The position numbers and the translations under genes were made by a program. From IMG/VR virus record IMGVR_UViG_3300032116_000001, positions 62,001 to 126,000 of that record: a stretch of DNA of 64,000 nt; one strand, written 5' to 3'. Shown here piece by piece: positions 34,287 to 52,896 of this stretch (the first letter of the stretch is position 1; every line of letters starts with the position of its first letter). Under the pieces are notes generated by a model, which worked only from the letters and a program-made list of their open reading frames with translations, was not told the origin of the DNA and ran no database searches.

Positions 34287-34306
34287 ATAAACGAAATTAA
34301 AGTAAC

Positions 34307-36319: not shown

Positions 36320-37327
36320 ATGTCAAATATTATACCGAAAAACAAATCAAATATTTCTAAATCTGGCAAAAATCAGGCTAGGCAAAAGGAAATTTTGCAT
36401 TTTCAAGAGCGCCTTGAAAATGCAATCCTTAATTATCAACAGGCTTTGTCAGATAACAACTCTGTTTCAATAGAAAAATTTTATGCTCTAATTTGCGAAT
36501 TATATCCTCCGCAAAAACATATAGCAGAATGGTACAGTAAATATTATTTCCTATATGATACTGCTGAGGACTTTAATCAAGAATACGAAATGATTTTTTG
36601 CAAAGTGATTTCGAAATGGAAGCCACGAAATGAGAGGCGCGTAAGTCGTCACGAAGGCTCTGGCGAGTTTAAAAATTACTTTATGGGTGCTTTGCAAAAC
36701 CACTACACAAATCTTGTTAAGGCGAGTAGCGCAGGAAAAAGAAATATGGGCTGCAAATGTCCCATTTGTAATATATGGGTTAGCCCTCTTTCAAATCACC
36801 TGAGACAACATCATGTGGAACTTTTGTGGGAACAGCTGCTAAGTTTCGGGTATGATATTAATACTTTGACAGCCTGCCCATTTTGTAAATCTCACAAAGT
36901 TCCAAGACAAATTTTATGCGATCACCAAGAAGAAGGTGCATGTGATGTCTGCAAGTTTAAGGCAGAAAATGACGCGCTTCGTAAACACATGTTGTCTAAG
37001 CACTCGACGTATTTATTTCAAAGATTTAGTGAGCTTTATCCCAATCACAACACCATGAAACCAAAAGAGGTTAGTGTGTGGGTATCGGACGAAGATGAAA
37101 ATGGTGATGAAAACTGCTACTATGATTTAACGCCAGAAGAAAATAAAATCAACATTCTGATGAACCTAAATTTAACAGACATTGAGCAGTCTATATTAAC
37201 TATGGCTCTAAGCGGAAACAGTGTAATTACATATAAGTCCCATCTTTATAAATGTAGTGAAGAGGATTTTAACATTGCTTTAAACAGCCTTCGTGACAAA
37301 ATGTCACTAGCTGGTATAGAAGGGTAA
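36320..37327 (+). CDS. Sigma-factor-like protein with inserted C2H2/C4 zinc fingers
   Basis: Region-2-like FKNYFMGALQNHYTNL; CPIC..H...H, CPFC, CDVC..H...H; region-4-like LTDIEQSIL...ALNSLRDKM. Confidence 0.55.
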   Translation: MSNIIPKNKSNISKSGKNQARQKEILHFQERLENAILNYQQALSDNNSVSIEKFYALICELYPPQKHIAEWYSKYYFLYDTAEDFNQEYEMIFCKVISKWKPRNERRVSRHEGSGEFKNYFMGALQNHYTNLVKASSAGKRNMGCKCPICNIWVSPLSNHLRQHHVELLWEQLLSFGYDINTLTACPFCKSHKVPRQILCDHQEEGACDVCKFKAENDALRKHMLSKHSTYLFQRFSELYPNHNTMKPKEVSVWVSDEDENGDENCYYDLTPEENKINILMNLNLTDIEQSILTMALSGNSVITYKSHLYKCSEEDFNIALNSLRDKMSLAGIEG

Positions 37328-37330
37328 AAA

Positions 37331-37690
37331 ATGAGCGAAAATAACACAGAAACAAAAAATAAACAATTAGACCCACAAACACTGAGGGCGCGTGGAGGCG
37401 ATCCAAACAACCCAGACCCAAGTCGCAGACCCACCGATCCTGTTGGGCTTTCGCGAAGCATTATGCATGTTTTAGAGGATCATGAATATGTTAGGATTAA
37501 TTCTGTTGGTCCCGTCGCTTTGAATTCTGTCATGGCTGCTTTTCGCATAGCCTCAAGAGAAATAGAGAGCCGCACAACAGGGGCTGTATTGGTAATACGC
37601 CAATCAGAGTATCCCGCGACTATTGATGGCAAGCAAACAAAGGGAGTTTGTACTAGAATTTTTGCGATACCGATTAAATATGCCCAATAA
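37331..37690 (+). CDS. spoVS: SpoVS (Alba-like) family protein
   Basis: TDPVGLSRSI...INSVGPVALN...IDGKQTKGV aligns by eye with SpoVS (SNPNSVAGAL...IQAIGAGALNQ...IDGEERTAI). Confidence 0.7.
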   Translation: MSENNTETKNKQLDPQTLRARGGDPNNPDPSRRPTDPVGLSRSIMHVLEDHEYVRINSVGPVALNSVMAAFRIASREIESRTTGAVLVIRQSEYPATIDGKQTKGVCTRIFAIPIKYAQ

Positions 37691-37706
37691 ACAAGGAATA
37701 AATTAC

Positions 37707-38213
37707 ATGTTTAAATCCCCATTTTCTCGCAGCCTATCTGAAAGGCAACAGTGGTTAAACAAAGTGTTGCTTGAGGGCGAAAATCCATTTAAAATGGACG
37801 AAAATTCTTCTCAAAATTCAAAGGCCACAGATGATAAAAACATGAATAATATTTTCAACGCAAACAACTCATGGAGTGATCTTATTCAAAAAGCCAAACA
37901 ACAAAATGGGCCTGTAATCGTAAGAGACAATCAGATTTTAGTCGAAGGCAACGACCAAGCATCTGCGATTGCAATGGTGGGATTGAAAAAATGTCTTACT
38001 GGCCTTAAAACAGATATTGAAAATATAAGTGAATCAGAACTTCATGATTTGGTTTTGCGCCAGATTTCACAAAATAGAACAGCACGCAAGTCTTTGATGC
38101 TTACTTTAAGATTTTTAAGAGACTTAGATGCAGAAGCTTTTTTGGAAAACGAACATGAAATTAGGAGTCAGTCAGCCCTTCTGGCTCAAATAAAGGCTTT
38201 TAATCAGCAATAA
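37707..38213 (+). CDS. Hypothetical protein
   Basis: ATG 37707 with AAGGA upstream. Confidence 0.65.
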   Translation: MFKSPFSRSLSERQQWLNKVLLEGENPFKMDENSSQNSKATDDKNMNNIFNANNSWSDLIQKAKQQNGPVIVRDNQILVEGNDQASAIAMVGLKKCLTGLKTDIENISESELHDLVLRQISQNRTARKSLMLTLRFLRDLDAEAFLENEHEIRSQSALLAQIKAFNQQ

Positions 38214-38433
38214 GGCATAAATATAACTAAATATATGCGACACGATATACATTAAAAAACAAGATATTTTCAAGCAATGTCTCATTTTGATGAAAGTGTC
38301 GTTTTTATTTTTTTATCCGTGAATTGTTGACCAAAACCACACTAATTATATAACAGAAATAAGTTGTTTAAGGCAAAGCGGGCTGCCACTAATCAACTTG
38401 AAAAAAACAACACAAATTTTAAGGAGAATAACA

Positions 38434-41115
38434 TTGACATCACATATTTTTACACCAGTCGCACTAAAGCACGAGGCAAGATGGACCTATTCCGAGGCAT
38501 ATGACTCAAGCTTGGCATATTTTAATGGTGACGAATTGGCAGCTTCAACTTTTGTTAGTAAGTATGCCCTCAAAGACCCCAGAAATTCAAGTACGCCTTT
38601 CGCAGAAACTAATCCATCTCACATGCACAAAAGATTAGCAACGGAAATAGCCGTCAAAGACGTTAATTTTCAATGTGGCACCAATTATTGCAGCCTTGAG
38701 GAAATGACCCCTGAGCACAAATCTGTGTGGGAATCAAAATATCAAGAATATTTTGATGCATTTGATAATTTTAAATTTATCGTGCCTCAGGGAAGCCCAA
38801 TGTATGGAATAGGAAACCCATTTGTGAGAGTTTCTATTTCAAATTGTGTTGTTACTCAGTCGCCACAGGACAGCGTATCGGGAATTCTTGACACCTGCAA
38901 AGATCATGCCAATTTATTTAAGCGACGAGCTGGTGTTGGTACGGACTTGTCCACTCTTAGACCAGCTGGAACAGCAGTGTCAAATAGCGCTGGCACATCA
39001 ACAGGTGCATGGAGCTTTGCTGACTTGTTCTCAAGTGTTTGCAGAAAGATCGGTCAAAATGGTCGGCGTGGAGCCCTTATGCTAACAATGAATGTTAAGC
39101 ACCCAGATATTGACAGATTTACTGTAATGAAACATGACCTTACTGCGGTTACGGGGGCCAATGTTTCAATTATGCTGGAAGACGATTTTATGGTGGCTGT
39201 TGAAAATGACCAAGAATGGATGACAAAATGGCCTGTTGAAACTGTCGAAGAACTTGGAATTGTTGAATGTGATGTTGATGATCTTCTTTCAAAAGGCGGT
39301 GAGTGGGTAGAAGTTCCTGCTGACATAAATAATCCAATTGACTCAAAGATATGGCATTCTAATGATTTGTCAGAAAAGCGTGTGCTACGAATTTTTAAGG
39401 CACAGGATTTATGGAAGTTAATCAATACTAGCGCCTGCACCACCGCTGAGCCTGGGCTTATATTCTGGGGCAACTATACCAGAAACTTGCCTGCGCACAG
39501 ATATCCTGCATTTAAGACTATTTGCGTTAATCCATGTTCAGAAATTGGTCTTTCAGCTTTTGACTCCTGCCGCCTAACATCTTTGAATCTTAAGAACTTT
39601 GTGGTGCATCCATACACCAAGGATGCGTATTTTGACTACAATCTTTTTGAAAAGATAACACGATTAGGCATGAGAGTCATGGATAATATTGTTGAAATTG
39701 AAATTGACTATCTCAATAATATTATAAATGCAGTAGATGACCAGGATGAAAAAATTGTTTTTGAAAAGCTTCGAAACGCTGCTGTCCTTGGAAGAAGAAC
39801 GGGATTAGGCGTACATGCTTTGGCTGATGCTTTATCGGCATTAAACATCAGATATGACAGCGACGAATCCATAGAAGCGCTTCATAAAATATTTGCCTGC
39901 TTCCGAAATACGTCTTATGACGAATCCGTGAACCTGGCTATCGAACGCGGGGCGTTCGGGGCATTTGATTGGGAATTAGAAAAAGACTGTGAATTTATCA
40001 CCAGAATGCCTCAAGAACTTCAGGAAAAGATTCAAAAACATGGTCGCAGAAACATCAGCATCCTTACCGTTGCACCCACAGGGTCTGTAAGTATTGTTTC
40101 TCAAACAAGCTCTGGCATTGAACCTGTCTTCAAGTATTTCTATATGAGAAGAAAGAAAATTAATCCTAGTGACCCAAATGCAAAAATTGATTTTGTTGAT
40201 CAAAATGGCGACAAATGGGAAGAATTTATGGTTTTCCACCCCGCCCTTGCAGACTATTTTGCCATTGATTTAGAGGCAAAGCAAAAGTGGGAATCTATTC
40301 AGGCAGAAAAACCGAAAGGCGAGTGGGCGGCTGAATTAAATAAAATTCTACCGAGCTTTTTTGTTCAGGCGGAAGATGTCTTGGGAGAGCGGCGAGTAGA
40401 GGTCCAGGGTGTTATACAAATGTATATTGACCATGGTATTAGCTCAACTATCAACTTGCCTAAGGGCACAACCGCTGACCACGTGGCAAATCTTTATTTC
40501 AAGAGTTGGCAACATGGCCTAAAGGGCGTGACCGTTTATGTTGATGGTAGCCGAACTGGTGTTCTTGTGTCCGCAGACGCAACAAGCAAAACAAAAAATG
40601 CCACTTCAATTGTGGAAACAGAAGCGCCAAAGAGACCCAAATCACTTCCTTGCAAAATTCATCATGCTAGTATCGAGGGTCAAAAATGGACTGTTTTGGT
40701 TGGCTTGCTTGAAGGAAAGCCTTATGAGGTTTTTGGAGGCCTGTCCCACAATATTGAACTTCCGAAGAAGCTTTCTGAAGGATATTTAATTAAAAATAAA
40801 TGCCCCAAGGCAGACGCCAATGGCAGAAGATCATGTTATGATCTTGTTATCGGAGAAGATGGCGATGATCAGCTGGTCATTAGAGACATAGCTATGTCAT
40901 TCAACGATAATAATTATGCCTGGGCCACTAGAATGCTTTCTACAAGCCTTAGACATGGCACACCTTTGAGATTTGTAGTTGATCAGCTGCGTCGCGACAA
41001 AGCATCTGGATTGACAAGTTTTTCAAAGGTCATGGCAAGAGTTTTGTCAACTTATGTCATCGATGAAGAAACTGGGTTGCATGTTGATTATTGTAAAACT
41101 GGCAACTGCGAGTAA
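38434..41115 (+). CDS. nrdJ: Class II (adenosylcobalamin-dependent) ribonucleotide reductase
   Basis: SNC, RRGALM, NPCSE, RRTGLG, TVAPTGS, ISSTINL, KGVTVY; no beta subunit nearby; TTG start with SD AAGGAG. Confidence 0.9.
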   Translation: MTSHIFTPVALKHEARWTYSEAYDSSLAYFNGDELAASTFVSKYALKDPRNSSTPFAETNPSHMHKRLATEIAVKDVNFQCGTNYCSLEEMTPEHKSVWESKYQEYFDAFDNFKFIVPQGSPMYGIGNPFVRVSISNCVVTQSPQDSVSGILDTCKDHANLFKRRAGVGTDLSTLRPAGTAVSNSAGTSTGAWSFADLFSSVCRKIGQNGRRGALMLTMNVKHPDIDRFTVMKHDLTAVTGANVSIMLEDDFMVAVENDQEWMTKWPVETVEELGIVECDVDDLLSKGGEWVEVPADINNPIDSKIWHSNDLSEKRVLRIFKAQDLWKLINTSACTTAEPGLIFWGNYTRNLPAHRYPAFKTICVNPCSEIGLSAFDSCRLTSLNLKNFVVHPYTKDAYFDYNLFEKITRLGMRVMDNIVEIEIDYLNNIINAVDDQDEKIVFEKLRNAAVLGRRTGLGVHALADALSALNIRYDSDESIEALHKIFACFRNTSYDESVNLAIERGAFGAFDWELEKDCEFITRMPQELQEKIQKHGRRNISILTVAPTGSVSIVSQTSSGIEPVFKYFYMRRKKINPSDPNAKIDFVDQNGDKWEEFMVFHPALADYFAIDLEAKQKWESIQAEKPKGEWAAELNKILPSFFVQAEDVLGERRVEVQGVIQMYIDHGISSTINLPKGTTADHVANLYFKSWQHGLKGVTVYVDGSRTGVLVSADATSKTKNATSIVETEAPKRPKSLPCKIHHASIEGQKWTVLVGLLEGKPYEVFGGLSHNIELPKKLSEGYLIKNKCPKADANGRRSCYDLVIGEDGDDQLVIRDIAMSFNDNNYAWATRMLSTSLRHGTPLRFVVDQLRRDKASGLTSFSKVMARVLSTYVIDEETGLHVDYCKTGNCE

Positions 41116-41118
41116 ACC

Positions 41119-41168
41119 TTTTACACAAAAAAACCAGGCCGTAAAAAGCCTGGCTTTTTTGTGTAAAA
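41119..41168 (+). terminator. Intrinsic terminator after nrdJ
   Basis: CCAGGC/GCCTGG stem flanked by A and T tracts. Confidence 0.8.
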
Positions 41169-41171
41169 ATA

Positions 41172-41184
41172 ACTAATATAAAAA
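41172..41184 (+). promoter_or_regulatory. ACTAATATAAAAA motif (copy 3)
   Basis: Directly after the nrdJ terminator. Confidence 0.55.
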
Positions 41185-41198
41185 GGGGAAATATTGAT

Positions 41199-41690
41199 AT
41201 GAAATCACGAACTGTATCAAACTTTAAAAAAGAAAATCACAAACCTGGTCCGCCAGAAGTGAAGAGTTCCAGCCCTGAACCAAATTATCAAGAAAGGCTT
41301 CTTTATATCAAAGACGCCCATGTGGTGGAAGACGAGGGAACAGAAGAAGACCCAATTGTAAAAAAAACATTATGGCTGCTTCTGCAAGATTCTGAAACAA
41401 ATGCCATTATGCGCTGCCCGCTGACGCTTGAGGATGTGCAGTCTATAACAGGTATGAGCCGCAATTTATTGGGCAGAGAGCTTTATAAATTTGCAGATGA
41501 ACTCAAAATGAGGGACCATCCTGTGAAATTAATTGTTGATCTAAACCAGTCAACTTTTGACACAAATATGATATTAGCAAAAAAGCCCGCAAAATCATCA
41601 AAAAGCCAACGAGAAATTCGTCAAAAAACAAAGTTCAGTTTTGACCCCAAAAAAGCACAAGAAATACAAAAAAGAGTTAATCATGAGTAA
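41199..41690 (+). CDS. Hypothetical protein
   Basis: 163-aa ORF after the ACTAATATAAAAA motif. Confidence 0.7.
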   Translation: MKSRTVSNFKKENHKPGPPEVKSSSPEPNYQERLLYIKDAHVVEDEGTEEDPIVKKTLWLLLQDSETNAIMRCPLTLEDVQSITGMSRNLLGRELYKFADELKMRDHPVKLIVDLNQSTFDTNMILAKKPAKSSKSQREIRQKTKFSFDPKKAQEIQKRVNHE

Positions 41691-42174
41691 AAATACCATT
41701 CAAGTAAGAGCATTTCGCGACGGAGCTTCGATCCCCGAAAAGTCCACGGCCTTAGCGGCGGGCTATGACATTCGAGCATGGACAGCGCCTGTTGCTGGCG
41801 GTTCCCGACGCGAAGTAATTGCCATTAGTCCAGGTTCTAGTGCCATTATTAAAACGGGCCTGAATTTAAGCATTCCTGAGGGCTACGAAGTTCAAATTCG
41901 GCCCCGATCAGGCCTTGCTGCCAAAAAATCAATTGGAGTTTTAAATTCCCCTGGAACAATTGATGCAGATTACGATGGCGAAGGAGAAAATTTTGAAGTA
42001 GGAATTATCTTATTTAACCACGGGGATACACAGTTTGAAGTCAATCACGGTGATCGAATTGCCCAAATGGTGGTTTGTAAGTTGCCAGAAATAGAACTTG
42101 TAGAGGTTACTGACGAAAATCATCAAAGAAAAGAAAGCCAGAGAGAAGGCGGCTTTGGACACACGGGCGTTTAA
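41683..42174 (+). CDS. dut: Trimeric dUTPase
   Basis: AAGYD, RPRSGLA, GTIDADY, GDRIAQ, REGGFGHTG. Confidence 0.95.
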   Translation: MSKNTIQVRAFRDGASIPEKSTALAAGYDIRAWTAPVAGGSRREVIAISPGSSAIIKTGLNLSIPEGYEVQIRPRSGLAAKKSIGVLNSPGTIDADYDGEGENFEVGIILFNHGDTQFEVNHGDRIAQMVVCKLPEIELVEVTDENHQRKESQREGGFGHTGV

Positions 42175-42180
42175 TCGACA

Positions 42181-42315
42181 CAAATAGATGAATTAATTAT
42201 TTTTCTAGACTGCGGCGGAGTGCTAAACGATCATCAACAAAATGATAACGGTAATCACGGATTTGCATTGGACGATTATGATCTGTCTGTTAAGTTGACC
42301 GAATCTTATAAGTAA
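42181..42315 (+). pseudogene. Relic of a HAD-family phosphatase gene
   Basis: Frame reads LIIFLDCGGVLNDH...ALDDYDL (compare HAD motif I IFLDxDGVLN and motif IV DD); no start codon; middle missing. Confidence 0.45.
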
Positions 42316-42353
42316 AAACAATTTGAAACATACAACAAGATAGTTATTATGTT

Positions 42354-44099
42354 TCAAATTGTTTTTACCGCAGCAATTGAAGATGCGACTCTAATTGATT
42401 GATCAATAAAGTCGGCTGATTTAAAGTCACCATTTTCCTCAAAAAACACTGCAAGGCGATTCATATCATCGAGAACTTTTGCAATGCGTATGCAAATATT
42501 TTCCGAGGAGCTAACAGTTTGCATACCTTCGTCTTTTTGTTTTGTGAAGTATGGATAAGACGCATTTTCTCGAACAACAAGGCTTTTGTCTGATTTTCCA
42601 GATTTCCAATTTTGAAGCTCAATGTCCATGATTTTTTTTCTTTCTTCTTCTGGGGCATTGTTGTGCAAAAATCCAAATGTGTTATCATCGCGCCTTAAAG
42701 ACATTAATGTTCCATTATTGTATCCTAAATTATTATAGGCGTTGTCACGTATTTTTTGTGCTTCCTCATCGCTGATTTTGTCCCAGGGCTTGTCTCCAAA
42801 TTGTTCTTTTTTTATTTGGTTGTACTGAAAGTGCCGCAACAATTCATCCACACCAAAAAGCACACTTCTCCATTCTTTCGTATCGAGTCGAGATGCCCTG
42901 GCAATAATTTGATCACGTGTTGTTGCTTTGATTCCAGCTTCATCAAGTTTGTTTTTAAGCGTTATTAAGAAATCTTGCTGAAGCATGTTAATATTAACAA
43001 GTTTCTTTGTGCCTGCTTCTTTATTGCTTCGGCCCGCAACATCTGCGTGCAGTTTAGCCTCAAGCATTGACTCGTACATTATCTCCATTATTTTTCTTGC
43101 AGTTTGGGGGTCTGTAATTTCATATGCGCGTCTGAAAATAATATGCAACGGTAAGCGACCGTTTTGCTCGACCTGATATTGCTTCAGCTTATAAATGGGC
43201 AAGAAAGCGTTTTCGGCTACCCATTGCCCTGATCCTTGAAAATATCTTGCTCGATTATTAGCCTTTGTAACAACTTCATCTATGTCAGCGGTGTCTCGGC
43301 TGATTAATTGGCCCTTTCTTCTGCGCATAAGGCTTGCTGGTACTGGACCCAAAGATTTTTGTCCAGATTGCTGGGCCAAATCTGGATTATTGGGTTTTTG
43401 TTTGCTTTCAATTTGATTCCTTAAATTAATATCTTCTTCCCATTGTTTGAGATTTTCTAATTCTTCAAATTGAGATCGATTCATATTGGGATTAGATTCA
43501 ATTTCTTTAATCTTGAACTGAATCGTTCTTAAAAGAGCCACATAATCCACATATTGATCTTGCGCCATATAGTCAATATGTGGGGGCATTTTGGTATTTT
43601 CATCTGAAACAAACTTTGGGTGCGGGTTGACTAGTTCGTCATAAGATAAATGATTGTCGAGCGCATCTTTCGGAGCTAAGTTTTTTTGTTTGTATTGAAA
43701 TACGGCTGATTTAGCTGATAGTTTAGCTCTGTTTAAAAGCCAGTTGTAAGGAGATGACACTCCTGATTCGTTGCGTATATCATAAGTTTCCAGGCTAGAC
43801 TCAATGCCTCTTTTCCACATATAATACATGACCTTTGATGACAAATCTTCGGCAGAATGTTTCTCTATTTCAGGATGCACCGTATTAATATATTTTAACG
43901 CCGTCTCTTCAAGAAGTTGCAAAAAACCTGGCAAATTCTTGATTTTTTGCAAAATTTCTCCTGACCGAGGGCTTTCTGTTTTGTAGCGAAAAACCAGATC
44001 ATTTAATGCTGACTTCAGGGATGATTCCTGGGCATTTTTGATAAATTTTAAAAAATTCACCGCATATTTTGGAAGCGCCTGGCGCATTGTATAATGCAT
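42354..44099 (-). CDS. Large protein with sigma region-2-like segment and C-terminal tag; apparent paralog of 60356..62722
   Basis: AEDLSSKVMYYMW...YNWLLNRAK; KPWDKISDEE block shared with the 60356 protein; C-terminal LAVFFEENGDFKSADFID. Confidence 0.55.
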   Translation of the reverse strand: MHYTMRQALPKYAVNFLKFIKNAQESSLKSALNDLVFRYKTESPRSGEILQKIKNLPGFLQLLEETALKYINTVHPEIEKHSAEDLSSKVMYYMWKRGIESSLETYDIRNESGVSSPYNWLLNRAKLSAKSAVFQYKQKNLAPKDALDNHLSYDELVNPHPKFVSDENTKMPPHIDYMAQDQYVDYVALLRTIQFKIKEIESNPNMNRSQFEELENLKQWEEDINLRNQIESKQKPNNPDLAQQSGQKSLGPVPASLMRRRKGQLISRDTADIDEVVTKANNRARYFQGSGQWVAENAFLPIYKLKQYQVEQNGRLPLHIIFRRAYEITDPQTARKIMEIMYESMLEAKLHADVAGRSNKEAGTKKLVNINMLQQDFLITLKNKLDEAGIKATTRDQIIARASRLDTKEWRSVLFGVDELLRHFQYNQIKKEQFGDKPWDKISDEEAQKIRDNAYNNLGYNNGTLMSLRRDDNTFGFLHNNAPEEERKKIMDIELQNWKSGKSDKSLVVRENASYPYFTKQKDEGMQTVSSSENICIRIAKVLDDMNRLAVFFEENGDFKSADFIDQSIRVASSIAAVKTI

Positions 44100-44213
44100 A
44101 TGTGTATATTTGCAATTTAAATTAATTAGCACCTTTTTGCAAATTTTGCTTTTGATCACAAGTGCATTTTTGGCATTTTTTCACTATAAAATCAATGGGA
44201 GAAAACAAAACAT

Positions 44214-44720
44214 ATGCCCAAAGACATTACTTATGTACAATCTCTGGAACTTTACGAGATTGCTTTGAAATTAAAAGAACGATATTACCTTCATCTAGGT
44301 CACGTAGACTTGGATATTATTTATTTTGCCGAAAAACTTGGAGACAAGCCTAAGAAAGGCAAGATTGCTGAATTAAGCGGAATTTCTAATCCATGGGTAA
44401 AAGCCTTGCTTGCGAAAAATCAAAACGACAATAAGCTTTACTGCATGAGTGTTTGGTCTGCTGAATGGCTTGAGGTCACGCCAGCCAAGAAAGAATGGAT
44501 GGTCTTTAAGATGCTGTGCTCTGTGCACCCTCAGAACGACGGAAAGCTCAACAAGCCAGACATTTCCGACTTTGGTTATATTCAAGAGTTCTTTATGAAC
44601 GCTGGTGTTGGTCCTTATTGGGAATCTCAAGATGATTTGCCCTCGCTTTTGGGAACTGACCCGCTGGCCATTCCCCCTCCGCCTGACGACACGGATGAGG
44701 GCAGCACACTCGGAGAATAA
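44214..44720 (+). CDS. Phage metallopeptidase-like fold, zinc motif degenerate
   Basis: Family-like pattern ...W....KK..VFKMLCSVH...KPDISDF, with HExxH not retained. Confidence 0.5.
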   Translation: MPKDITYVQSLELYEIALKLKERYYLHLGHVDLDIIYFAEKLGDKPKKGKIAELSGISNPWVKALLAKNQNDNKLYCMSVWSAEWLEVTPAKKEWMVFKMLCSVHPQNDGKLNKPDISDFGYIQEFFMNAGVGPYWESQDDLPSLLGTDPLAIPPPPDDTDEGSTLGE

Positions 44721-44770
44721 ATAAAATATCTGCCCGCCTCAAATAATGTAATTTTTGGGGCGGGATATCA

Positions 44771-45511
44771 ATGTATAAACTTATGTCAAATTCAGCATAT
44801 ACTCAGTCAATAACAGAGCTTTTTGCAAAATTATACAAACCAAGATCGGAAGTTGTTCCTTTTAACAGGAGTGACTTGGAGACGATATGCCAAAAATATA
44901 ATGTTAAAAACATAGGAGATGTTTTGTATAGTTTTCGCAGCCGTCAGCAATTACCAAGTAGCATTAGAAGAACTGCAAAAAGAGGATTTCACTGGGTTAT
45001 TGAATTTAAGGGCAAGGGGAAATACCAATTTTCTCAATGGCCTGTTGCTTATATTAAGCCACAAATACTTGAGCCAACACTAATAAAAGATTGCACGCCC
45101 AAAATGATTAGCCAGTGTCTTGCGGATGATGAACAAGGCATGCTAACAAGAATGCGACACAATAATATACTGAGAAATTTTCTTGATCTTGATATTTATC
45201 ATCTTCAAAGCCATCTTAGAACATTTGTTCCTGGCGTTGGGCAAGTTGAAATTGATGATGTTTATGTTGGTGTTGATCAGCAAAGTAAACAATTTATCAT
45301 TCCTATTCAGGCCAAGTCATCTCATGATTTAATATCTGCGACACAATGTTCACAAGATATATTGTATTGCGAGTATTTTCATCCAAATTACAAATGTCGC
45401 TCGGTTGCAATAAAATCTATAGGAAATGAAACCTTGGCAGTTTTTGAATTAAAAGCAAAAGCCCCTGGCCATATTTGCATTGTAAATGAGCGTCATTTTC
45501 AATTTATTTAA
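44771..45511 (+). CDS. Type II restriction-endonuclease-like protein (PD-(D/E)XK), no adjacent methyltransferase
   Basis: KNIGDVLYSFR, DEQ, LQSHLRT.VPGVGQVEIDDVYVG...PIQAK. Confidence 0.6.
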   Translation: MYKLMSNSAYTQSITELFAKLYKPRSEVVPFNRSDLETICQKYNVKNIGDVLYSFRSRQQLPSSIRRTAKRGFHWVIEFKGKGKYQFSQWPVAYIKPQILEPTLIKDCTPKMISQCLADDEQGMLTRMRHNNILRNFLDLDIYHLQSHLRTFVPGVGQVEIDDVYVGVDQQSKQFIIPIQAKSSHDLISATQCSQDILYCEYFHPNYKCRSVAIKSIGNETLAVFELKAKAPGHICIVNERHFQFI

Positions 45512-45577
45512 AACTTTTTTATTAAACAAAACGTATAAATAAATACGTTGTCTTTAATAAGGCAAGGAAGGAACGAA

Positions 45578-46123
45578 ATAAACAACAACAATAATAATCG
45601 CAAATCGCGGCGAGAGCCGCCTCCGAACATTAATGAGCGTCTTCTCCGATTTGGAGAAATCAGAGTCATTAATGCAGATGGTGATCAAATAGGTATAATG
45701 ACGTCAAGAAAGGCGCTAGACTTGGCCTTGGAAGATGGCCTTGACTTGATTTTAATTGCTGAGTCTGCAAAGCCTCCTGTATGCAAAATTGCCGATTATG
45801 GTAAGCATAAATACATTGAGGCGAAGCGCAAGAAAACAAGCAACAGTAAAAAACCTCAAGAAACCAAGAGTCTTAAAATTAGCCCGAGAATTTCTGATCA
45901 CGATTTAGGTATTACGGCTAAAAAAGCCTCTAACTTTTTGGAGCATGGAGATAAAGTTAGACTAATGTGTTTATTCAAGGCCCGTGAGCTTTCGCACCCA
46001 GCGCTTGGAAAAGAAAGACTGGCAAAGCTTATTGATTGTCTTTCCAGCTCTGCAATACCCGAGGGTGAGCCTTTGTTGGAAGGCAAAGTAATGGCCGTGG
46101 TTTTGCGGCCCAAAGATAATTAA
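45578..46123 (+). CDS. infC: Translation initiation factor IF-3
   Basis: INER...IRVI..DG.QIGIM...LDL..IA..AKPPVCKIADYGKHKY...GDKVR. Probable ATA start at 45578 behind AAGGAAGG; alternative TTG at 45548. Confidence 0.92.
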   Translation: MNNNNNNRKSRREPPPNINERLLRFGEIRVINADGDQIGIMTSRKALDLALEDGLDLILIAESAKPPVCKIADYGKHKYIEAKRKKTSNSKKPQETKSLKISPRISDHDLGITAKKASNFLEHGDKVRLMCLFKARELSHPALGKERLAKLIDCLSSSAIPEGEPLLEGKVMAVVLRPKDN

Positions 46124-46138
46124 CGCACTCCAAAGCAC

Positions 46139-46180
46139 ACACAAAAAACATCATCTGTAAAAAGATGATGTTTTTTGTGT
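46139..46180 (+). terminator. Terminator after infC
   Basis: ACACAAAAAACATCATCT / AGATGATGTTTTTTGTGT. Confidence 0.7.
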
Positions 46181-46246
46181 TCAGATGATGCAGAATGCAC
46201 GAAAAACTATAAATGAGTATTTCTTCAGCGGAGAAAAAATCACATT

Positions 46247-47335
46247 ATGAGCCTTTATAATAAATACAGACCCTATCATTTTTCTGACGTGGCACAGGAG
46301 CATGTCTCTCGTGTGCTCAAGGCGCAAATTGCCACTGGAAACCACGTCAGTACTTATCTTTTTTCAGGTCCTCCAGGAACTGGTAAAACCACCCTTGCCA
46401 GAATTATGGCAATGGCTTTAATGTGTGAAAAAAGAATCGACGGCGAAAGCGAACCTGACCCAAGCAGCAAGTCTTCACAAATGATTCGAGAAGATCGCCA
46501 TCGCGATGTTATTGAGGTTAACTGTGCAACAAATGGCGGTGTTAATGAGATGCGAGAGCTAATTGCCGAAAAGATGCGCATTCAGCCATCAATGGGGAAT
46601 TATCGTGTGTTTATTTTGGACGAAGCACACATGCTTTCTACGGCTGCGCAAAACTCATTACTGAAAATCATGGAGGAACCGCCAAAGCATGTAGTTTTCT
46701 TTTTGTGCACAACTGATCCTCATAAAGTTTTGCCAGCAATACGCTCTCGCTGTCAGCATCATATGTTAAATCGCGTCTCTAACACAGATTGCAAGGAGAT
46801 TTTGCAAAAAGTTGTAAAAGAAGAATCGATGACCGCTGAAAATGCGGCCTTGGATGTTATCATTGATGCATCTCAGGGTAGCGTTCGGACTGCATTAGTC
46901 ATCCTAGAGCAAGTATCGCTAATCGGCGTGACAGAAGACAATGTCCGCGCTGTATTAGGACGTGGCCCAAAGGGGTTGGCAATTGATCTTTTAAAATCAA
47001 TTGGTAATTCAAACCATGGAGAAGCTTTTAGAATAATTAAATCTGCTCATGCTGAGGGTCGTGACTTAGGCGCACTTTTGGAGGACGCGAGTAGAATTTT
47101 AATGACTATGGCTGAATACAGGTTGCTCAAGGTTGACAAATCGGAACGAGACCCAGAGATTGCTGAAATGATTTCTGTTTTTCGAGGCCCTCAGATAGTG
47201 GAAATCACCAATCAACTTTTAGAAATCGCTAATAAGATACGGCAAAATGTGGCAGCAGATTTGGTAGTTCAATCAGGCTTGCTGCGGATTATTGATAGGT
47301 TTGCAAAGATTAAGGAAGCGCAAGCGGTAGTTTAA
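46247..47335 (+). CDS. dnaX: DNA polymerase III clamp loader subunit gamma/tau (short, gamma-like)
   Basis: LYNKYRP, GPPGTGKTT, DEAHML, LLKIMEEPP, IRSRC. Confidence 0.93.
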   Translation: MSLYNKYRPYHFSDVAQEHVSRVLKAQIATGNHVSTYLFSGPPGTGKTTLARIMAMALMCEKRIDGESEPDPSSKSSQMIREDRHRDVIEVNCATNGGVNEMRELIAEKMRIQPSMGNYRVFILDEAHMLSTAAQNSLLKIMEEPPKHVVFFLCTTDPHKVLPAIRSRCQHHMLNRVSNTDCKEILQKVVKEESMTAENAALDVIIDASQGSVRTALVILEQVSLIGVTEDNVRAVLGRGPKGLAIDLLKSIGNSNHGEAFRIIKSAHAEGRDLGALLEDASRILMTMAEYRLLKVDKSERDPEIAEMISVFRGPQIVEITNQLLEIANKIRQNVAADLVVQSGLLRIIDRFAKIKEAQAVV

Positions 47336-47409
47336 CTCCTCTGAGGCTTCAAACGACCAGGCAAACATTAATTTGCCACAGGGAGGTTTAAAAGCCGTGA
47401 GGAGCAAAA

Positions 47410-48102
47410 TTGGGACAAGACCTATATATATTACAACTAGTTAGAAGGGCCAAAACTGGAGATGAGCGAGCTTTTTCTAGGCTCCTGGATGAAATAGAGC
47501 CAGACCTTAAAAAGGTCGCTCATCAATATTTTATTCAAGGACAAGACAAAGAAGATGTTCTTCAAGAACTAAGAATTGCAGTCTATAAGGCCGTGGGTTC
47601 CTATGATGAATCCCAAAACACTACGTTTAAAAGCTTTTGCATCAATCTTGTGTGTAAAAGGCATATATCCACGGCAATACATTCTGCACTAAGACACAAA
47701 AACAAAACTCTCAACAATGCAGTATCTCTTGATGCTCCAGTGATAATGGGTGATGATGGAAATATGCAATCTCTATCCGAGTTCATTCCTGACAGAGACA
47801 ATCCTTTGGAAGAAGACCTTGGTGATCGAAATATATTAGACGATTTGATATCCAGAGAGGAGCTTGAGGACAACCGCAAGCTTCTTGCGCCAAGGCTTAC
47901 ATCATTAGAGGGCAGGATTTTTGAGCAATATGGCCACAGCTCTTCGTATAAGGATATTGCAGAGGCATTGGGAATAGAACCCAAATGTGTTGACAATGCT
48001 CTTATGAGGATACGCAAAAAAGCCAGTGAAGTTTTTGACCAAACAGACCCAGGCAGCAATGTCAAAGATAGCGGCCCCAAAAAAAGAAGAAAACGAATTT
48101 AA
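47410..48102 (+). CDS. sigH: RNA polymerase sigma factor, SigH (Spo0H)-like
   Basis: YFIQGQDKEDVLQE...FKSF...KR.I.TAI..A.R.K.K.LN..VSLD...SYKDIAE...KCVDNALMRIRKK; TTG start with SD GAGGAG. Confidence 0.85.
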   Translation: MGQDLYILQLVRRAKTGDERAFSRLLDEIEPDLKKVAHQYFIQGQDKEDVLQELRIAVYKAVGSYDESQNTTFKSFCINLVCKRHISTAIHSALRHKNKTLNNAVSLDAPVIMGDDGNMQSLSEFIPDRDNPLEEDLGDRNILDDLISREELEDNRKLLAPRLTSLEGRIFEQYGHSSSYKDIAEALGIEPKCVDNALMRIRKKASEVFDQTDPGSNVKDSGPKKRRKRI

Positions 48103-48194
48103 AACCGTTTCATATTCGCGCAAAATTAACTAAGAAAGATAAATAGCTATGTCAAAGTACATCAAGCTATTTATCTTTTGAATTTAGAGGCAAT

Positions 48195-49361
48195 ATGAAA
48201 TTTACCCTTACACGATCTACTGCTTTAACAGTGTTAAAGCAAGCACTAAAAACTTGCAATACTAAGGCAAAGGGGCAGGCTGATTCTGAGTTCCTTTTTA
48301 AGCCAGATGACAATGCCTTGTTGGTTACATCACTTAATGAAACATCGGAGCAAAATATTGTTTTACAGTGCAGCGACCTAGAATTTGAACAGGGAGAGAG
48401 CTTCTCCGTGTCGGGGCAGGCTCTTGTAGAATTTCTGCAACAATTCCCCGAAGAAGAGGTAAAGTGTCTTTACAACCCTGATGACTCATCGTTTGTTATA
48501 GGAAGTAAGAAAACTAGATTTGCATTTCCTACTGGTTCGGGATCAGATTTTGTTCCCTTTAATTTTCAGTCTCATGGTAAGGCAATTGAGCTGCCCAGCA
48601 GCTCGTTAAGAGAGGTTTTGAAATCGACCGCCTTCGCTGCATCTCACGACTATACACAAGCTCCATTAACGGCGGTGCATTTAAAAATTGCCGATGATGA
48701 AATCGTTGCCGAGGCCTGCGACACATTGCGCATAAGCAGGCATGTCACGCAAGTAAGCAGCTTGTCGGACGAAGCCGAATTGCTTCTTCCTTATGAAACA
48801 GCAGAAAATTTAGTTTCTCTTATTGAAGACGTGGGCGACATTACCATACAGCCTGGCCAACGTCATGTAAGATTTGCATGGGGCGACACAACATTCACGT
48901 CAACTTTGGAAAACACCATTGGGAAACCATATCCTGAGCTTTCCAAATTTATGCAAGGCAAAGAAATTGGAAGAGTCAAAATCAGTAAGGGGAACCTTTC
49001 CACATCACTAAAGCTGGCAGGTTTAGTAGCAAAAGATTCCTATGTTAATGTTGTTATTAAGCCGCTAGATAAGGATGGTCTGGGCGGAGGGCTTGTTATA
49101 TCAGCCAATGAGCAAGCTGGCATGAGCCTGGATACATTAATTGTTCAAGAGCAATCTGGCGAAGCAGAGGTAAATGTGGCGCATAGATTTTTCTCTAAGG
49201 CTGTAGATTTTGTTAACAATCCCTGGGTGATTATTTCTTTCAGAGAATTAAAAGAAAACACCATCGCCTTGGTGTTGGTAGACGGTGGGTTTGAGCACCT
49301 GATATTCCCAGTCACCCCAAATGCAACCCCAGATGTTGAAGATGAAGAATCAGAAGATTAA
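48195..49361 (+). CDS. dnaN: DNA polymerase III beta sliding clamp
   Basis: 388 aa; TAFAAS, ACDTLRI, KPYPEL, LIFPV; between dnaX and the delta-like gene. Confidence 0.8.
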   Translation: MKFTLTRSTALTVLKQALKTCNTKAKGQADSEFLFKPDDNALLVTSLNETSEQNIVLQCSDLEFEQGESFSVSGQALVEFLQQFPEEEVKCLYNPDDSSFVIGSKKTRFAFPTGSGSDFVPFNFQSHGKAIELPSSSLREVLKSTAFAASHDYTQAPLTAVHLKIADDEIVAEACDTLRISRHVTQVSSLSDEAELLLPYETAENLVSLIEDVGDITIQPGQRHVRFAWGDTTFTSTLENTIGKPYPELSKFMQGKEIGRVKISKGNLSTSLKLAGLVAKDSYVNVVIKPLDKDGLGGGLVISANEQAGMSLDTLIVQEQSGEAEVNVAHRFFSKAVDFVNNPWVIISFRELKENTIALVLVDGGFEHLIFPVTPNATPDVEDEESED

Positions 49362-50469
49362 CAGCCATAATAAGCAATGGGAAAAAGTTTATGTTGTATG
49401 TGGCGATCCTCTATTAAGTAGATTATTTATTCAGGGCATACAAGAAGACTTGAATACGCCATCAAAAAGAACATTTGACAAGGGAGATTCACCTAAGTCC
49501 ATTGTTAATGCACTTAAAGCTTTTGTAATGTTTGATACGCCAGATATGGTGGTGATTTACGACCCAAGCGCAGAGCAGATGCGAACTATTGAATCTTTTT
49601 TGGACGCGGAAGTTATGACAGCTTCCGCGTTGGTAATTGCCACATTGGGGGATTTGCCAGATGGAAGGTCCAAATTTATTCAAAAAGCAGAAAAACAAAA
49701 AAGAGTATTTTTTATGTCGCCGATTGAATACAAGGACACAAAAAGTCTTAAATCACATTTGCTTGAATGGGCGGAAGATGCACAAGTGTCCTTTGATAAA
49801 GACGCAATTAATTGGATATTATCGAATGCTCCTGCATGTGTGGGAAAGATCAAATCACCCAGTGGCAAAAAAGATTGCGAAGTTTATGATTTGCAATCTA
49901 TTGAAAATGAATTAGAAAAAATTAAAGTAATCAATAGCCTGGGAAATTACAAAATATGTGTTGCTGATCTTGAAAAGTATGTAAGATTTGATTATTACAT
50001 TGATATTTGGAGTTTTATTAATGTGGCAATTTCAAATGGCTCAAATGCAGGCGATGCATTAAAAATGATCCAGATTATTGCCAATAGTCAGGGCACTCAA
50101 GCTGCCTTGATCCTATTGGCATCTCAAATAGAATTTTTACTTTGCATTAAGTCATTGCAAAATAGAAATATTCAAAAAGCCGAGGCAATAGCAGAATTCA
50201 TGTCCATGGATTCCTATTTAGGTCGTTATCTTTTGCCCGATTGGACAGAAATTAACGAAATACCAACTTTACCCAAGCCGAATGCATGGCGCATTCGCAA
50301 GGCCATTGAATCGCCGATTCCCTCGACCGAGCGATTATCTTTATTGTATCAATCAGTATTATCGGCCATTCGTGATTTAAGATCGGGGCTGGATGAAAGA
50401 ATTGTTCTTCCGTATCTTGCTCTTTGCCTGGGCGGGCATAATTCCTATATCACACCCCTTAAACAATAG
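49321..50469 (+). CDS. Clamp loader delta (HolA)-like subunit
   Basis: VYVVCGD, DGRSKF, FDKDAINWIL, LQSIENELEKI, IWSFIN pattern. Confidence 0.6.
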   Translation: MQPQMLKMKNQKINSHNKQWEKVYVVCGDPLLSRLFIQGIQEDLNTPSKRTFDKGDSPKSIVNALKAFVMFDTPDMVVIYDPSAEQMRTIESFLDAEVMTASALVIATLGDLPDGRSKFIQKAEKQKRVFFMSPIEYKDTKSLKSHLLEWAEDAQVSFDKDAINWILSNAPACVGKIKSPSGKKDCEVYDLQSIENELEKIKVINSLGNYKICVADLEKYVRFDYYIDIWSFINVAISNGSNAGDALKMIQIIANSQGTQAALILLASQIEFLLCIKSLQNRNIQKAEAIAEFMSMDSYLGRYLLPDWTEINEIPTLPKPNAWRIRKAIESPIPSTERLSLLYQSVLSAIRDLRSGLDERIVLPYLALCLGGHNSYITPLKQ

Positions 50470-50529
50470 GTTCAAATCTTAGATTTGAAGAATTATATTG
50501 AGGAATTAATAAGTTTCGGAGGTAGTTTT

Positions 50530-51120
50530 GTGGAAGCCCATTATCAATATATTAATGATTTAGTAACAAAATCACAAAATGGGGACACAAATGCTTTGTC
50601 AGATATTGCAGAATTTTATAGCCCGCTCATATCTGCATCTATCCAAAGATGTATTCTTAGAGAACCCAGGCTTTTGAGATTCAAAGAAGATGTTGAAGCA
50701 GAAGTTTTTTTAATCCTTAAAAAGCTTGTAGAGAATTACGATCCCAATTTGTCTTATTTTTCTTATTATATATCCACTCGTTTAGATTATGCAATTATCA
50801 ATCAGTGTAGGCAAACAATCCTGGGCCTTAAATCTAATTCTCGATTCTGTGAGGAAGTTTCTTTTTCTGATATATCAGAAGATTTAGATATTGTCAACCA
50901 TGATGATCCTTTTGGTAAAATTCATGTTGCGCAGGCAATTCAAGGGGCGATTGATAAATTGAATCCTCGACAAAAAGAAGCAATAGAAGCTTACTTTTTT
51001 GACAACTTAACTCAGCAAGAAGCCGCGAAAAAACTTGGCATTACACAAGCTTCGTTTTGTAAAAGGCTTCAGCGAGGCCTGAACAGCATGAGAGAATTAT
51101 TATCCGAAGATTTTATTTAA
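50530..51120 (+). CDS. Sigma-70 family factor (regions 2 and 4)
   Basis: YSPLI, EDVEAE, YDPNLSYFSYYI, LNPRQKEAI...LTQQEAAKKLGITQ; GTG start with SD GGAGGT. Confidence 0.85.
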   Translation: MEAHYQYINDLVTKSQNGDTNALSDIAEFYSPLISASIQRCILREPRLLRFKEDVEAEVFLILKKLVENYDPNLSYFSYYISTRLDYAIINQCRQTILGLKSNSRFCEEVSFSDISEDLDIVNHDDPFGKIHVAQAIQGAIDKLNPRQKEAIEAYFFDNLTQQEAAKKLGITQASFCKRLQRGLNSMRELLSEDFI

Positions 51121-51297
51121 CAAAAGGAATATTTTTCACAATTTAATCCAACTATATTTCTATGCCGCATATTTTTATGGCAAATTTTGTCATAAAAATA
51201 TATTAACATATGTTTTAGCAGGATTTTGCTCAATCAATATGAAAATATATTATGCGGAGTATTTGAGGGACAATCCTTCGCCAAGGAGATTCAAGAC

Positions 51298-52023
51298 GTG
51301 TTTGCCGCCAAAGATGCTGATATCATCTACAACTGGAAAAATGAACTTCGCCAAACCAATAAAGGTGAAAAGACCGTAGCTGCACAAAGCGCATTAGATT
51401 TGCAAAGACGAGGCTTTAGCGCAGCGGAGGCCATAGAATTGCTAGCTGCCGACAAGTTTGGGCTCGATGTTGCCGAAAGCGCAGTTTATGAAATTTATGG
51501 CAAAGAGCAGCGGGAAGCTAGAAAAAACATTGTAAAAACCGCGATGGTCGTGCCAACATCTTATAATGACGTTGCTCCCATCATTGAGGAAACACTTTCG
51601 AGACTTTCTCCGAAAGAATTTGTCCATAAATTGGCTAGAAGCGAAATGCCAATTTTAAGAGTGTCTTCAAAAAACATCGAATCTTGGTACAGGCTCGCCA
51701 CGGCTGCTAAGGAATACGGCGGGCATGCTATGACCGTGTTGCATTCAGAACTTCGGCCCTGGGTTGAAGAAACTATGCTTAAATCAGTTCTTATCGCAGA
51801 AAAAGAAAACTCAAGTATTCAGAGGCTTTCTTCTGACAGAAAACAATTTAGAGTTGCCATGCAAAAAGAATCAGCAGATGTGGACTTGGACATGGGCGTT
51901 TCCACGGGAACAAGATTCCAGAAAGGCAATTTTTCTGACTTTGGCCTAGCTGATGAATTTATGATCCAGGCTGCTGATCATTCATCGCCTTATGAGCGCT
52001 TAAAACGCGCACTTAGCATGTAA
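51298..52023 (+). CDS. Hypothetical protein (late region)
   Basis: GTG start behind AAGGAG; AGGA-N17-GAAAAT promoter at 51220. Confidence 0.65.
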   Translation: MFAAKDADIIYNWKNELRQTNKGEKTVAAQSALDLQRRGFSAAEAIELLAADKFGLDVAESAVYEIYGKEQREARKNIVKTAMVVPTSYNDVAPIIEETLSRLSPKEFVHKLARSEMPILRVSSKNIESWYRLATAAKEYGGHAMTVLHSELRPWVEETMLKSVLIAEKENSSIQRLSSDRKQFRVAMQKESADVDLDMGVSTGTRFQKGNFSDFGLADEFMIQAADHSSPYERLKRALSM

Positions 52024-52034
52024 ATAAAAGTATC

Positions 52035-52090
52035 ATAATCAAACTCTGTTTCTGATTTTCAGATTAAAACAGAGTTTGATTATTTTTTTT
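52035..52090 (+). terminator. Terminator after 51298..52023
   Basis: ATAATCAAACTCTGTTT / AAACAGAGTTTGATTAT followed by a T run. Confidence 0.7.
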
Positions 52091-52148
52091 TAGACATGCT
52101 TTTTAAATTGTATAAAAAGCAATAGTTTAATAAGGAGACGGCAGCGAT

Positions 52149-52892
52149 TTGAGCGATAATGATCAGGAAAACTTTGACAGTCAAGAAATTATTGACGATC
52201 AAAGTAAAATAATAGATGTTTTAGACCTAGAAGATAAACAATCATTATCTATGCCCGAGGTGTCTGATGAAGAACTTAGGTTATTCAGAGACTTAAAAGA
52301 TGGGGAGAAGCCAATTATACCTATCCCAAAGGAATACCCCCTTTCTATTCACTATCCCCAATTTACTGAAAAAAGATGCGCAATTTGCTCTAGTCCATTC
52401 AGGGACCTTGCAGAACACGTATACATACACAATGCAAAAAAACCACAAGAAGTTATAAAGTTCTTTGAAAGACATTTTAATGCAAAGCTTAATTGGACAC
52501 AGGTCCAAAATCACATGGAAAGCCACTGCAATTTAAGAAACATTGCAGTTAAAGGCCTTGAAACATATCGCAACCGTGAAGAAGACGTTGCTGAATGGAT
52601 GGGCAGAGAGTATTATTTAGTAATGTTGGCGCTTTTAAGTGAACTTGACTCTGTTGCTGGTATCGATTGTTCAAAAAATCCCGAGCTTAAACTAAAAAGA
52701 GCCAGCATGGTAGAAAGACTGACAACAAAAATCAGGGAGCTTAAGAAAGACATGGATGATGTTATGGGAGCATTTAACATCTTTGAAATTTTGCTGAATT
52801 TGCACAATCAAATGGAAAGTGAATTTGATAAAAAAATGATTCGAGACGTAACCAGCGAATTAAGAAAGAAACTTCAAGAAAGACAAGGATAA
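52149..52892 (+). CDS. Putative terminase small subunit / zinc-HTH protein
   Basis: CAIC...NHMESH; helical C-terminus; immediately upstream of TerL. Confidence 0.5.
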   Translation: MSDNDQENFDSQEIIDDQSKIIDVLDLEDKQSLSMPEVSDEELRLFRDLKDGEKPIIPIPKEYPLSIHYPQFTEKRCAICSSPFRDLAEHVYIHNAKKPQEVIKFFERHFNAKLNWTQVQNHMESHCNLRNIAVKGLETYRNREEDVAEWMGREYYLVMLALLSELDSVAGIDCSKNPELKLKRASMVERLTTKIRELKKDMDDVMGAFNIFEILLNLHNQMESEFDKKMIRDVTSELRKKLQERQG

Positions 52893-52896
52893 CCAA

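Follow-up and report, generated by a model that had tools for sequence, protein, structure and literature searches.

A 64-kb stretch of viral DNA (the window: 64,000 nucleotides, spanning bases 62,001-126,000 of one viral record of 378,848 bp, judged 100% complete by CheckV and here called the freshwater jumbo phage G000) encodes a type II restriction endonuclease (REase) without a methyltransferase partner, in a genome from which CCGG and about 13 other palindromic sites have been purged. Our interest in this gene arose from an earlier reading of the window, made from the letters alone (the original prediction), in which the REase-like gene and a seeming lack of CCGG were proposed to be connected. 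The results presented here confirm both observations and separate them from one another. The loss of CCGG is real but is not associated with the nuclease, and a different missing palindrome, CGATCG, is reasonably likely to be the sequence that enzymes of this family recognise. Considered as a whole, the case is striking, but it combines two phenomena that are already familiar: restriction-site avoidance and the toleration of a solitary REase through the absence of its site.

The nuclease gene encodes a protein of 246 amino acids (aa), or of 242 aa if translation begins at the alternative start at position 44783 (Met5) chosen by other gene callers (P0001). Sequence searches of Pfam, PHROGs, NCBIfam and PDB with this open reading frame (ORF) returned no match. 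The PADLOC profile REase_II PDLC03404 aligns with it from end to end (E 1.3e-67, residues 6-245 against profile positions 2-244 of 260), and the same profile detects a cellular member of the family, P0080, at E 1.4e-111. The family includes at least 136 homologs of about 265 aa, and the identical phage protein was located on 21 contigs. An AlphaFold2 model computed from 45 homologs (mean predicted local distance difference test score 95.2, predicted template modelling score 0.89) contains a winged-helix domain followed by a PD-(D/E)xK nuclease domain. Comparison of the model with solved structures using VIA-align gave matches at the level of single domains only. The N-terminal domain resembles the winged-helix domain of DpnI, the MCM winged helix and the cullin WHB domain (Z 5.3-6.5), while the C-terminal domain resembles NucS/EndoMS (Z 8.1), Hjc (Z 6.8-7.4) and the REases BpuSI, DrdV and SdaI (Z 5.3-6.5). 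A Foldseek search of the PDB yielded nothing at E <= 0.001 and only weak matches to Cas4/ACE1, AddB and EndoMS.

Three further phages carry a solitary copy of the gene. These are G003 (46 kb, 55% guanine plus cytosine (GC), syntenic with the window), whose nuclease is 59% identical to that of G000; G001 (198.5 kb, 58% GC; 38% identical), of which G004 is a near-duplicate of the same kind; and G002 (191 kb, 63% GC; 32-34% identical). The catalytic set is intact in all four phage copies, and G000 and G003 preserve each of the 30 family-invariant positions. Judged by this conservation and by homology, the ORF is a type II REase homolog with intact catalytic residues, as the original prediction had supposed from its REase-like appearance. 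It probably encodes a type IIP enzyme, composed of winged-helix and PD-(D/E)xK domains, and the G000 enzyme is presumably active.

Analysis of 80 cellular loci from species-representative bacterial genomes established the family to which the phage nuclease belongs. Every one of the 80 cellular homologs lies directly downstream of an orthologous methyltransferase, which in 48 loci is a C5-cytosine enzyme (PF00145, about 430 aa) and in the other 32 an N4/N6-type enzyme (PF01555, about 450 aa). Each partner type forms a coherent orthologous group, with full-length identities of 56-69% for the C5 enzymes and 58-59% for the N4 enzymes. This pairing, universal among the cellular homologs examined, is missing from the phage copy. 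The original prediction had noted no methyltransferase in the window, and the statement extends further, with no match to the methyltransferase families PF01555, PF00145, PF02086 or PF02384 anywhere in the complete G000 genome. The phage nuclease is therefore a solitary member of a true restriction-modification (R-M) family. It is 35-42% identical to the cellular members, and the phage copies are shorter, without a 3-residue segment and the C-terminal tail of the cellular homologs. A quick maximum-likelihood tree places the phage copies in two clades on long branches, the stem of the G000 clade measuring 2.8 substitutions per site, and this topology suggests about two captures from cellular systems, one in the G000/G003 clade and one in the G001/G002 clade.

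The absence of CCGG was evaluated under several null models. No copy occurs in the window, where 74 are expected from a second-order Markov model, 88 from a first-order model and 98 from base composition, and so the seeming absence reported in the original prediction, with dozens of sites expected, is a true zero. The entire genome likewise contains none against 519-626 expected. In the window the base after CCG is A, C or T in 385 cases and G in none. As had also been predicted for GGCC, CGCG and GATC, related words are common; these three and GCGC occur at normal frequency both in the window and in the G000 genome. In order to hold the proteins and the codon usage of each gene fixed, synonymous codons were shuffled 100 times within each of 302 G000 ORFs. 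The shuffled coding sequences contained 454 +/- 16 CCGG (the minimum in the 100 shuffles being 405) and the observed coding sequence none, while the control palindromes GGCC, CCGCGG, TGGCCA and CTGCAG were at or above expectation under the same null. CCGG thus falls below expectation by composition, by Markov models and by the codon-preserving null alike, as restriction-site avoidance entails. An assembly artefact is excluded, because the G000 locus recurs, near-identical, in sequencing runs from 12 studies dated 2017-2025, most of them freshwater metagenomes. The absence of CCGG from G000 is accordingly real, selected and genome-wide. A 10-kb megablast query against the phage collection gave no match. 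Five of the runs (X2-X5 and X8) that contain the locus at 100% of sampled words are labelled 'fungus metagenome', and the labelling of lake samples under that name is one possibility.

CCGG is the biggest of about 14 purged palindromes in G000. Fourteen 6-mers with a first-order expectation of at least 15 have a count of zero: twelve palindromes (ACGCGT, AGATCT, GGATCC, CCTAGG, CGATCG, CGCGCG, CGGCCG, CGTACG, CTCGAG, GCGCGC, GGCGCC and GGGCCC) and the pair AGATCC/GGATCT, which together with AGATCT and GGATCC makes up RGATCY. All of the missing 6-mers at that expectation are therefore type II-like palindromes or halves of RGATCY. The distribution of observed/expected ratios is bimodal, since the next-lowest 6-mer stands at 0.24. 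The only missing 5-mers are those that contain CCGG. GTCGAC and GAGCTC are nearly absent, with 1 and 2 copies respectively, and CGGWCCG is absent against 10.5 expected. Stated partly by enzyme, the sites purged beside CCGG include RGATCY, CGATCG and those of XhoI, SacI, SalI, MluI, AvrII, EagI, BsiWI, NarI, ApaI and BssHII. In total about 1,080 sites expected under the synonymous-shuffle null are gone from G000. The alternating hexamer is missing from G000 in either register, CGCGCG (27 expected) or GCGCGC (39 expected), with CGCG and GCGC normal, and G003 retains both hexamers (22 and 42 copies). We know of no common 6-bp enzyme for CGCGCG.

The selective agent is best sought outside the phage, and we attribute the multi-site purge to restriction pressure from freshwater hosts, acting independently of the nuclease gene. 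Host-driven avoidance is the established explanation for such losses (PMC6286503). The original prediction had offered avoidance of a host R-M system at CCGG as one of two readings, and in kind this reading is supported by the totality of the loss, by the codon-preserving null, by the restriction of the losses to type II-like palindromes and by the lineage-specific purges of related phages described below. It does not stand as an event specific to CCGG, with about 14 sites having been purged. As regards the identity of the host, the UDP-glucose dehydrogenase of the phage has its best cellular matches at about 53% identity in mixed phyla, and no tRNA gene was found in the window.

The nuclease and the loss of CCGG were then compared across phages. 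Relatives of G000 were collected through the Pol III alpha gene (54-64% identity), and none of the 16 records searched carries the nuclease. The nuclease-free relative G136 (347,392 bp, 99% complete; loci L215-L232) has 2 CCGG against 151 expected and 9 GGCC against 360, and the partial, nuclease-free G142 has none against 77. CCGG is normal (85 against 90 expected) in G132 (315,852 bp, 88% complete; loci L239-L254), which also carries no nuclease. Among the carriers, G000 and G003 have no CCGG, whereas G001 and G002 hold 1,157 and 2,120 sites, close to expectation. All four combinations of nuclease presence and CCGG loss thus occur among the phages compared. G001 has one C5 methylase about 6 kb from the nuclease, which shares with the cognate partners only generic motifs, and G002 has two PF01555 enzymes unrelated to the N4 partners. 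RE_HpaII (PF09561) and Endonuc-MspI (PF09208) matched neither the ORF nor anything genome-wide in G000, and neither is among the fold matches listed for the ORF. In the DNA around 107 cellular R-M copies the CCGG observed/expected ratio is 1.00. These results indicate that CCGG loss and nuclease presence are not associated, because the carriers G001 and G002 keep CCGG without a cognate methylase and G136 has nearly lost it without the nuclease; the connection put forward in the original prediction is therefore not supported.

Several of these phages have further peculiarities. The 309-aa C5 methylase of G001 (172407-173336, minus strand; L042:12407-13336) aligns over its full length with M.HhaI (E 1e-64) and for that reason is probably GCGC-specific. 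G001 keeps GCGC (1,060 copies) but has no AGCGCT against 48 expected, and it seems to mix methylation with avoidance. G132 shows a different total 4-mer purge, CTAG being absent against 788 expected, and has CGCG lowered to 7 against 34. In G136 the words CCATGG, AGGCCT and TGGCCA are at zero, and its provirus flag in IMG/VR might give a route to the host. Between G003 and G000 the clamp loader is 86% identical and the nuclease 59%; their GC contents of 54.6% and 40.6% lie 14 points apart, and their purge sets are almost identical.

Provided that the solitary copies are active, no carrier can contain the site that they cut. Seven words are at zero in G000, G001, G002 and G003, or present in 1-2 copies in G000: RGATCY, CGATCG, CTCGAG, GAGCTC, GTCGAC, CCCGGG and GCCGGC. 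CGATCG has a count of zero in each of the four, where 47-101 copies are expected in G000, 155 in G001, 178 in G002 and 20 in G003; in G000 coding DNA the synonymous shuffle predicts 37.5. The nuclease-free G136 retains CGATCG (3 against 7 expected) though it has purged CTCGAG and GTCGAC.

The partner methylases provide the second line of evidence. According to Elhai (2015), cyanobacterial CGATCG methylases are mostly 5-methylcytosine (m5C) enzymes that form one coherent group with DmtC, M.Ssp6803I and M.XorII, are replaced in some lineages by N4-methylcytosine (m4C) enzymes, and have a distribution almost coextensive with the HIP1 repeat GCGATCGC (PMC4390886). The same report describes a methylase of Calothrix PCC 7103 that adjoins a truncated gene resembling 'CGATCG-specific endonucleases' (PMC4390886), and Hagemann et al. 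(2018) found that slr0214 produces m5CGATCG and that its presence correlates with HIP1 (PMC6105098). The partners of our nuclease family behave in a similar manner, with both m5C and m4C forms occurring (48 C5-type and 32 N4-type). In a test set of 121 Cyanobacteriota genomes, 36 contain a single full-length ortholog of the C5 partner (46-72% identity). All 36 are HIP1-rich (1,673-10,195 copies), compared with 19 of the 85 that have no such ortholog (Fisher p 3.6e-17). Of the 36 orthologs, 31 are orphans. The nuclease itself is present in 5 of the 121 genomes, always adjacent to the C5 ortholog and once as a truncated remnant. N4-partner homologs were found in three cyanobacterial genomes, all of which belong to the 19 that are HIP1-rich without the C5 partner (p 0.003). 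The truncated remnant (G042:C9:79597-79839) retains residues 168-248 only and lies beside an intact DmtC-type methylase, like the published case in Calothrix PCC 7103 (Elhai 2015). In the 107 cellular loci, pooled and read without a control set, the depleted palindromes are GGGCCC, CGATCG (0.42) and GGATCC (0.47), and weight is given here only to the normal CCGG ratio of that pool. A search by name with the C5 partner methylase gave close homologs alone, all under generic names that are uninformative on specificity, and a literature search on PvuI and XorII endonuclease genes yielded nothing usable. The methylase distribution, the absence of the site from the carriers and the contrast with G136, taken together, make CGATCG the best-supported specificity of the family. 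The second reading in the original prediction, in which the phage enzyme cuts a site that the phage has purged, is therefore probably right in its general form, with CGATCG in place of CCGG as the site that better fits the carrier counts and the distribution of the partner methylase.

Several points weigh against CGATCG. The assignment is drawn from distribution, literature description and site absence. The correlation with HIP1 is partly confounded by phylogeny, and 16 HIP1-rich cyanobacterial genomes have neither the C5 nor the N4 partner type. Some of these 16 may be published exceptions such as Synechococcus elongatus, and others may use a third methylase family. Six other sites, RGATCY, CTCGAG, GAGCTC, GTCGAC, CCCGGG and GCCGGC, are also absent from all four carriers. 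The long phage branches and the missing segment and tail could reflect a drift in specificity. Finally, host DNA would escape cleavage if its CGATCG sites were methylated by the host, as they are in many cyanobacteria.

The explanation that we favour, and hold to be probably correct with appreciable room for doubt, is the capture of a CGATCG-type enzyme without its methylase and its toleration in a site-purged genome. Host restriction pressure would have removed CGATCG from the phage genome along with the other sites, its absence being one part of a purge of about 14 type II palindromic sites that selection drove across the genome. An endonuclease gene would have been captured from a bacterial R-M operon without its methyltransferase, and the phage, with no CGATCG in its genome, would be immune and could keep the enzyme without protection. 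During infection the enzyme might then leave the phage genome intact and cleave host, plasmid or competing-phage DNA wherever CGATCG is unmethylated; where the host itself methylates CGATCG, the target would be DNA other than that of the host.

The most direct rival retains CCGG as the site: an HpaII/MspI-like nuclease for which the phage purged CCGG, and which it wields against host or competitor DNA. Two carriers, G000 and G003, do have no CCGG, and the copy of their clade is so diverged that a change of specificity would be conceivable. We nevertheless consider this reading highly improbable, given the intact copies in the CCGG-replete G001 and G002, which have no cognate or CCGG-type methylase, the near-total loss of CCGG from the nuclease-free G136, the lack of a match to the HpaII and MspI families, the unbiased CCGG ratio at the cellular loci and a partner methylase distribution that fits CGATCG instead. 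An active solitary enzyme directed at one of the other commonly absent words (RGATCY, CTCGAG, GAGCTC, GTCGAC, CCCGGG or GCCGGC) is unlikely, though those words too are at zero, or at 1-2 copies in G000, in all four carriers. GGATCC is depleted in the pooled cellular loci, and one homolog-bearing genome is a Dactylococcopsis, a genus said to have an RGATCY enzyme. Enzymes of the XhoI, SacI, BglII/BamHI and XamI types, however, have Pfam families, none of which the ORF matches; the partner methylases are C5 or N4 cytosine enzymes whose distribution follows HIP1/CGATCG; and G136, without the nuclease, has purged CTCGAG and GTCGAC yet keeps CGATCG.

The gene might alternatively be a silenced or domesticated relic, inactive without a methylase partner or reused as a structure-specific nuclease of recombination or repair. 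Its position within a replication/recombination module, the SbcCD-like and ERF genes that neighbour the nuclease in G001 and G002, the nearest solved folds (NucS and Hjc) and the long branches are consistent with such a role, and there is a precedent for loss of activity in PaeR7I, which is inactive once its methylase is deleted (PMC3488263). A relic would hardly be expected to keep 30 of 30 invariant positions, including those beyond the catalytic ones, after the deep divergence of G000 and G003, nor to retain its winged helix, to be intact across many samples and to have CGATCG missing from four of four carriers; we give this possibility a small probability. The purge might also be self-imposed, the phage carrying several unprotected REases with each purged site matching one of its own enzymes. 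G000 does have at least one solitary enzyme, whose inferred site has been purged, jumbo phages are rich in unannotated genes, and the G000 proteome was screened against part of the REase models. Relatives without the nuclease (G136, G142 and G132) are strongly purged all the same, G000 has no HpaII/MspI-type gene to account for its biggest purge, and host-driven avoidance is the explanation already established in the literature (PMC6286503), so that self-imposed purging is very unlikely. Of wider reach is the idea, possible but not one that we would call probable, that site-scrubbed jumbo phages capture methylase-stripped REases as self-safe weapons against host, plasmid and rival-phage DNA. 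Captures of this kind apparently occurred at least twice within the same CGATCG-type family, and G000 may hold more such enzymes among its unannotated genes.

The gene is a lineage-specific insertion within the replication module, because the metallopeptidase gene directly abuts the clamp-loader gene in G136 and G132 but is separated from it by the nuclease and a translation initiation factor IF3 gene in G000 and G003. The surrounding module encodes Pol III alpha, DnaB, beta clamp, clamp loader, RecA, RecJ, ribonucleotide reductase and sigma factors. The IF3 homolog, with both of its domains, lies just downstream of the nuclease, and the gene order of G003 is syntenic; IF3 is elsewhere in G136, is upstream of the metallopeptidase in G142 and was not found in G132. 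Outside this module, the intein mentioned in the original prediction is consistent with a LAGLIDADG segment in a long ORF whose host protein has no Pfam match. Two sugar-nucleotide enzymes are also encoded in the window and may act on the host surface or in glycosylation. Coordinates of these features are collected in Table 1.

Table 1 Features of the window, with positions counted from its first base
Feature	Position	Strand	Basis or remark
Whole window, without CCGG and about 13 other palindromic sites	1..64000	.	Part of genome-wide purge
UDP-glucose 6-dehydrogenase	549..1859	-	Sugar-nucleotide enzyme
Phage metallopeptidase gene	44214..44720	+	PF18894, E 3e-08; upstream boundary of insertion
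Type II restriction endonuclease gene, solitary	44771..45511	+	246 aa; PADLOC REase_II PDLC03404, homologs, AlphaFold2 model
N-terminal winged-helix domain, likely DNA-recognition module	44771..45043	+	Residues ~1-91; VIA-align, predicted model
C-terminal PD-(D/E)xK nuclease domain	45098..45508	+	Residues ~110-246; VIA-align, predicted model
E121-Q122, acidic helix residue of active site	45131..45136	+	Invariant in 45-sequence alignment A1; kept in 4/4 phage copies
E160-x-D162, first catalytic motif	45248..45256	+	Invariant in alignment A1; kept in G000, G001, G002, G003
Q180-A181-K182, second catalytic motif ((D/E/Q)xK part)	45308..45316	+	A181, K182 invariant, Q180 >=90%; kept in all phage copies
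Translation initiation factor IF3 homolog	45548..46123	+	IF3_N E 1.2e-24, IF3_C E 1.2e-21
Clamp-loader (DnaX/delta'-like) gene	46247..47335	+	PF13177, E 9e-38; downstream boundary of insertion
1,074-aa ORF with LAGLIDADG homing-endonuclease segment	52897..56121	+	Segment at residues ~474-542
UDP-galactopyranose mutase	57231..58436	+	Sugar-nucleotide enzyme

The scale of the purge, about 1,080 expected sites of about 14 specificities in a 379-kb genome, makes G000 an unusually clean natural case of site purging, and purge sets of this kind could serve as fingerprints of the restriction repertoires of uncultured freshwater hosts. The nuclease offers a testable case for phage REases without methylases, in which a genome already rid of the site can carry the enzyme at no cost, and the recurrence of solitary copies in jumbo phages is interesting and testable in its own right. 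For the family, which is widespread (at least 586 species genomes) and has no Pfam family and no solved structure, CGATCG provides a sequence-to-specificity hypothesis.

Among known systems, the HpaII and MspI endonucleases share with the G000 case the absence of CCGG and, for MspI, a similar protein size. They differ in having no sequence match to the phage nuclease, in that MspI is not among the fold matches listed, and in that homolog-bearing phages retain thousands of CCGG. The cellular family most likely belongs with the PvuI/XorII-type CGATCG R-M systems, with their DmtC/M.Ssp6803I/M.XorII m5C or m4C methylases. The cellular homologs stand directly behind a C5 or N4 cytosine methylase, the cyanobacterial C5 partner is mostly an orphan confined to HIP1-rich genomes, as published (PMC4390886), and CGATCG is missing from all phage carriers. 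The phage copy departs from these systems in being without a methylase, shorter and only 35-42% identical to the cellular members, and the likeness is drawn through distribution, site absence and published descriptions.

Loss of a restriction site is familiar from other phages; Staphylococcus phage K, for instance, is without GATC. The complete or near-complete loss of short type II palindromes by synonymous choices in G000 resembles the phage restriction-site avoidance described by Rusinov et al. 2018 (PMC6286503), on a larger scale, with a 4-bp site of about 500 expected copies and about 13 six-base sites removed over 379 kb, and with related jumbo phages each having a purge set of their own. 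PacI is a solitary enzyme tolerated by a host genome that lacks its site (PMC3488263), and in the same manner the unprotected phage enzyme would be compatible with its own genome through site absence. PacI is of the HNH class, and the absence of its 8-bp site from a bacterial genome is near chance, whereas the phage enzyme has a PD-(D/E)xK fold and a probable 6-bp site in a 379-kb genome with 37-101 sites expected, from which removal was clearly selected. Oliveira et al. 2014 counted 12 solitary REase genes in 831 phages (PMC4176335), and the G000 nuclease is likewise a phage REase gene without a methylase. Those genes were counted rather than explained, while here the carriers are free of the inferred site and belong to at least two jumbo-phage clades that appear to have acquired the enzyme independently.

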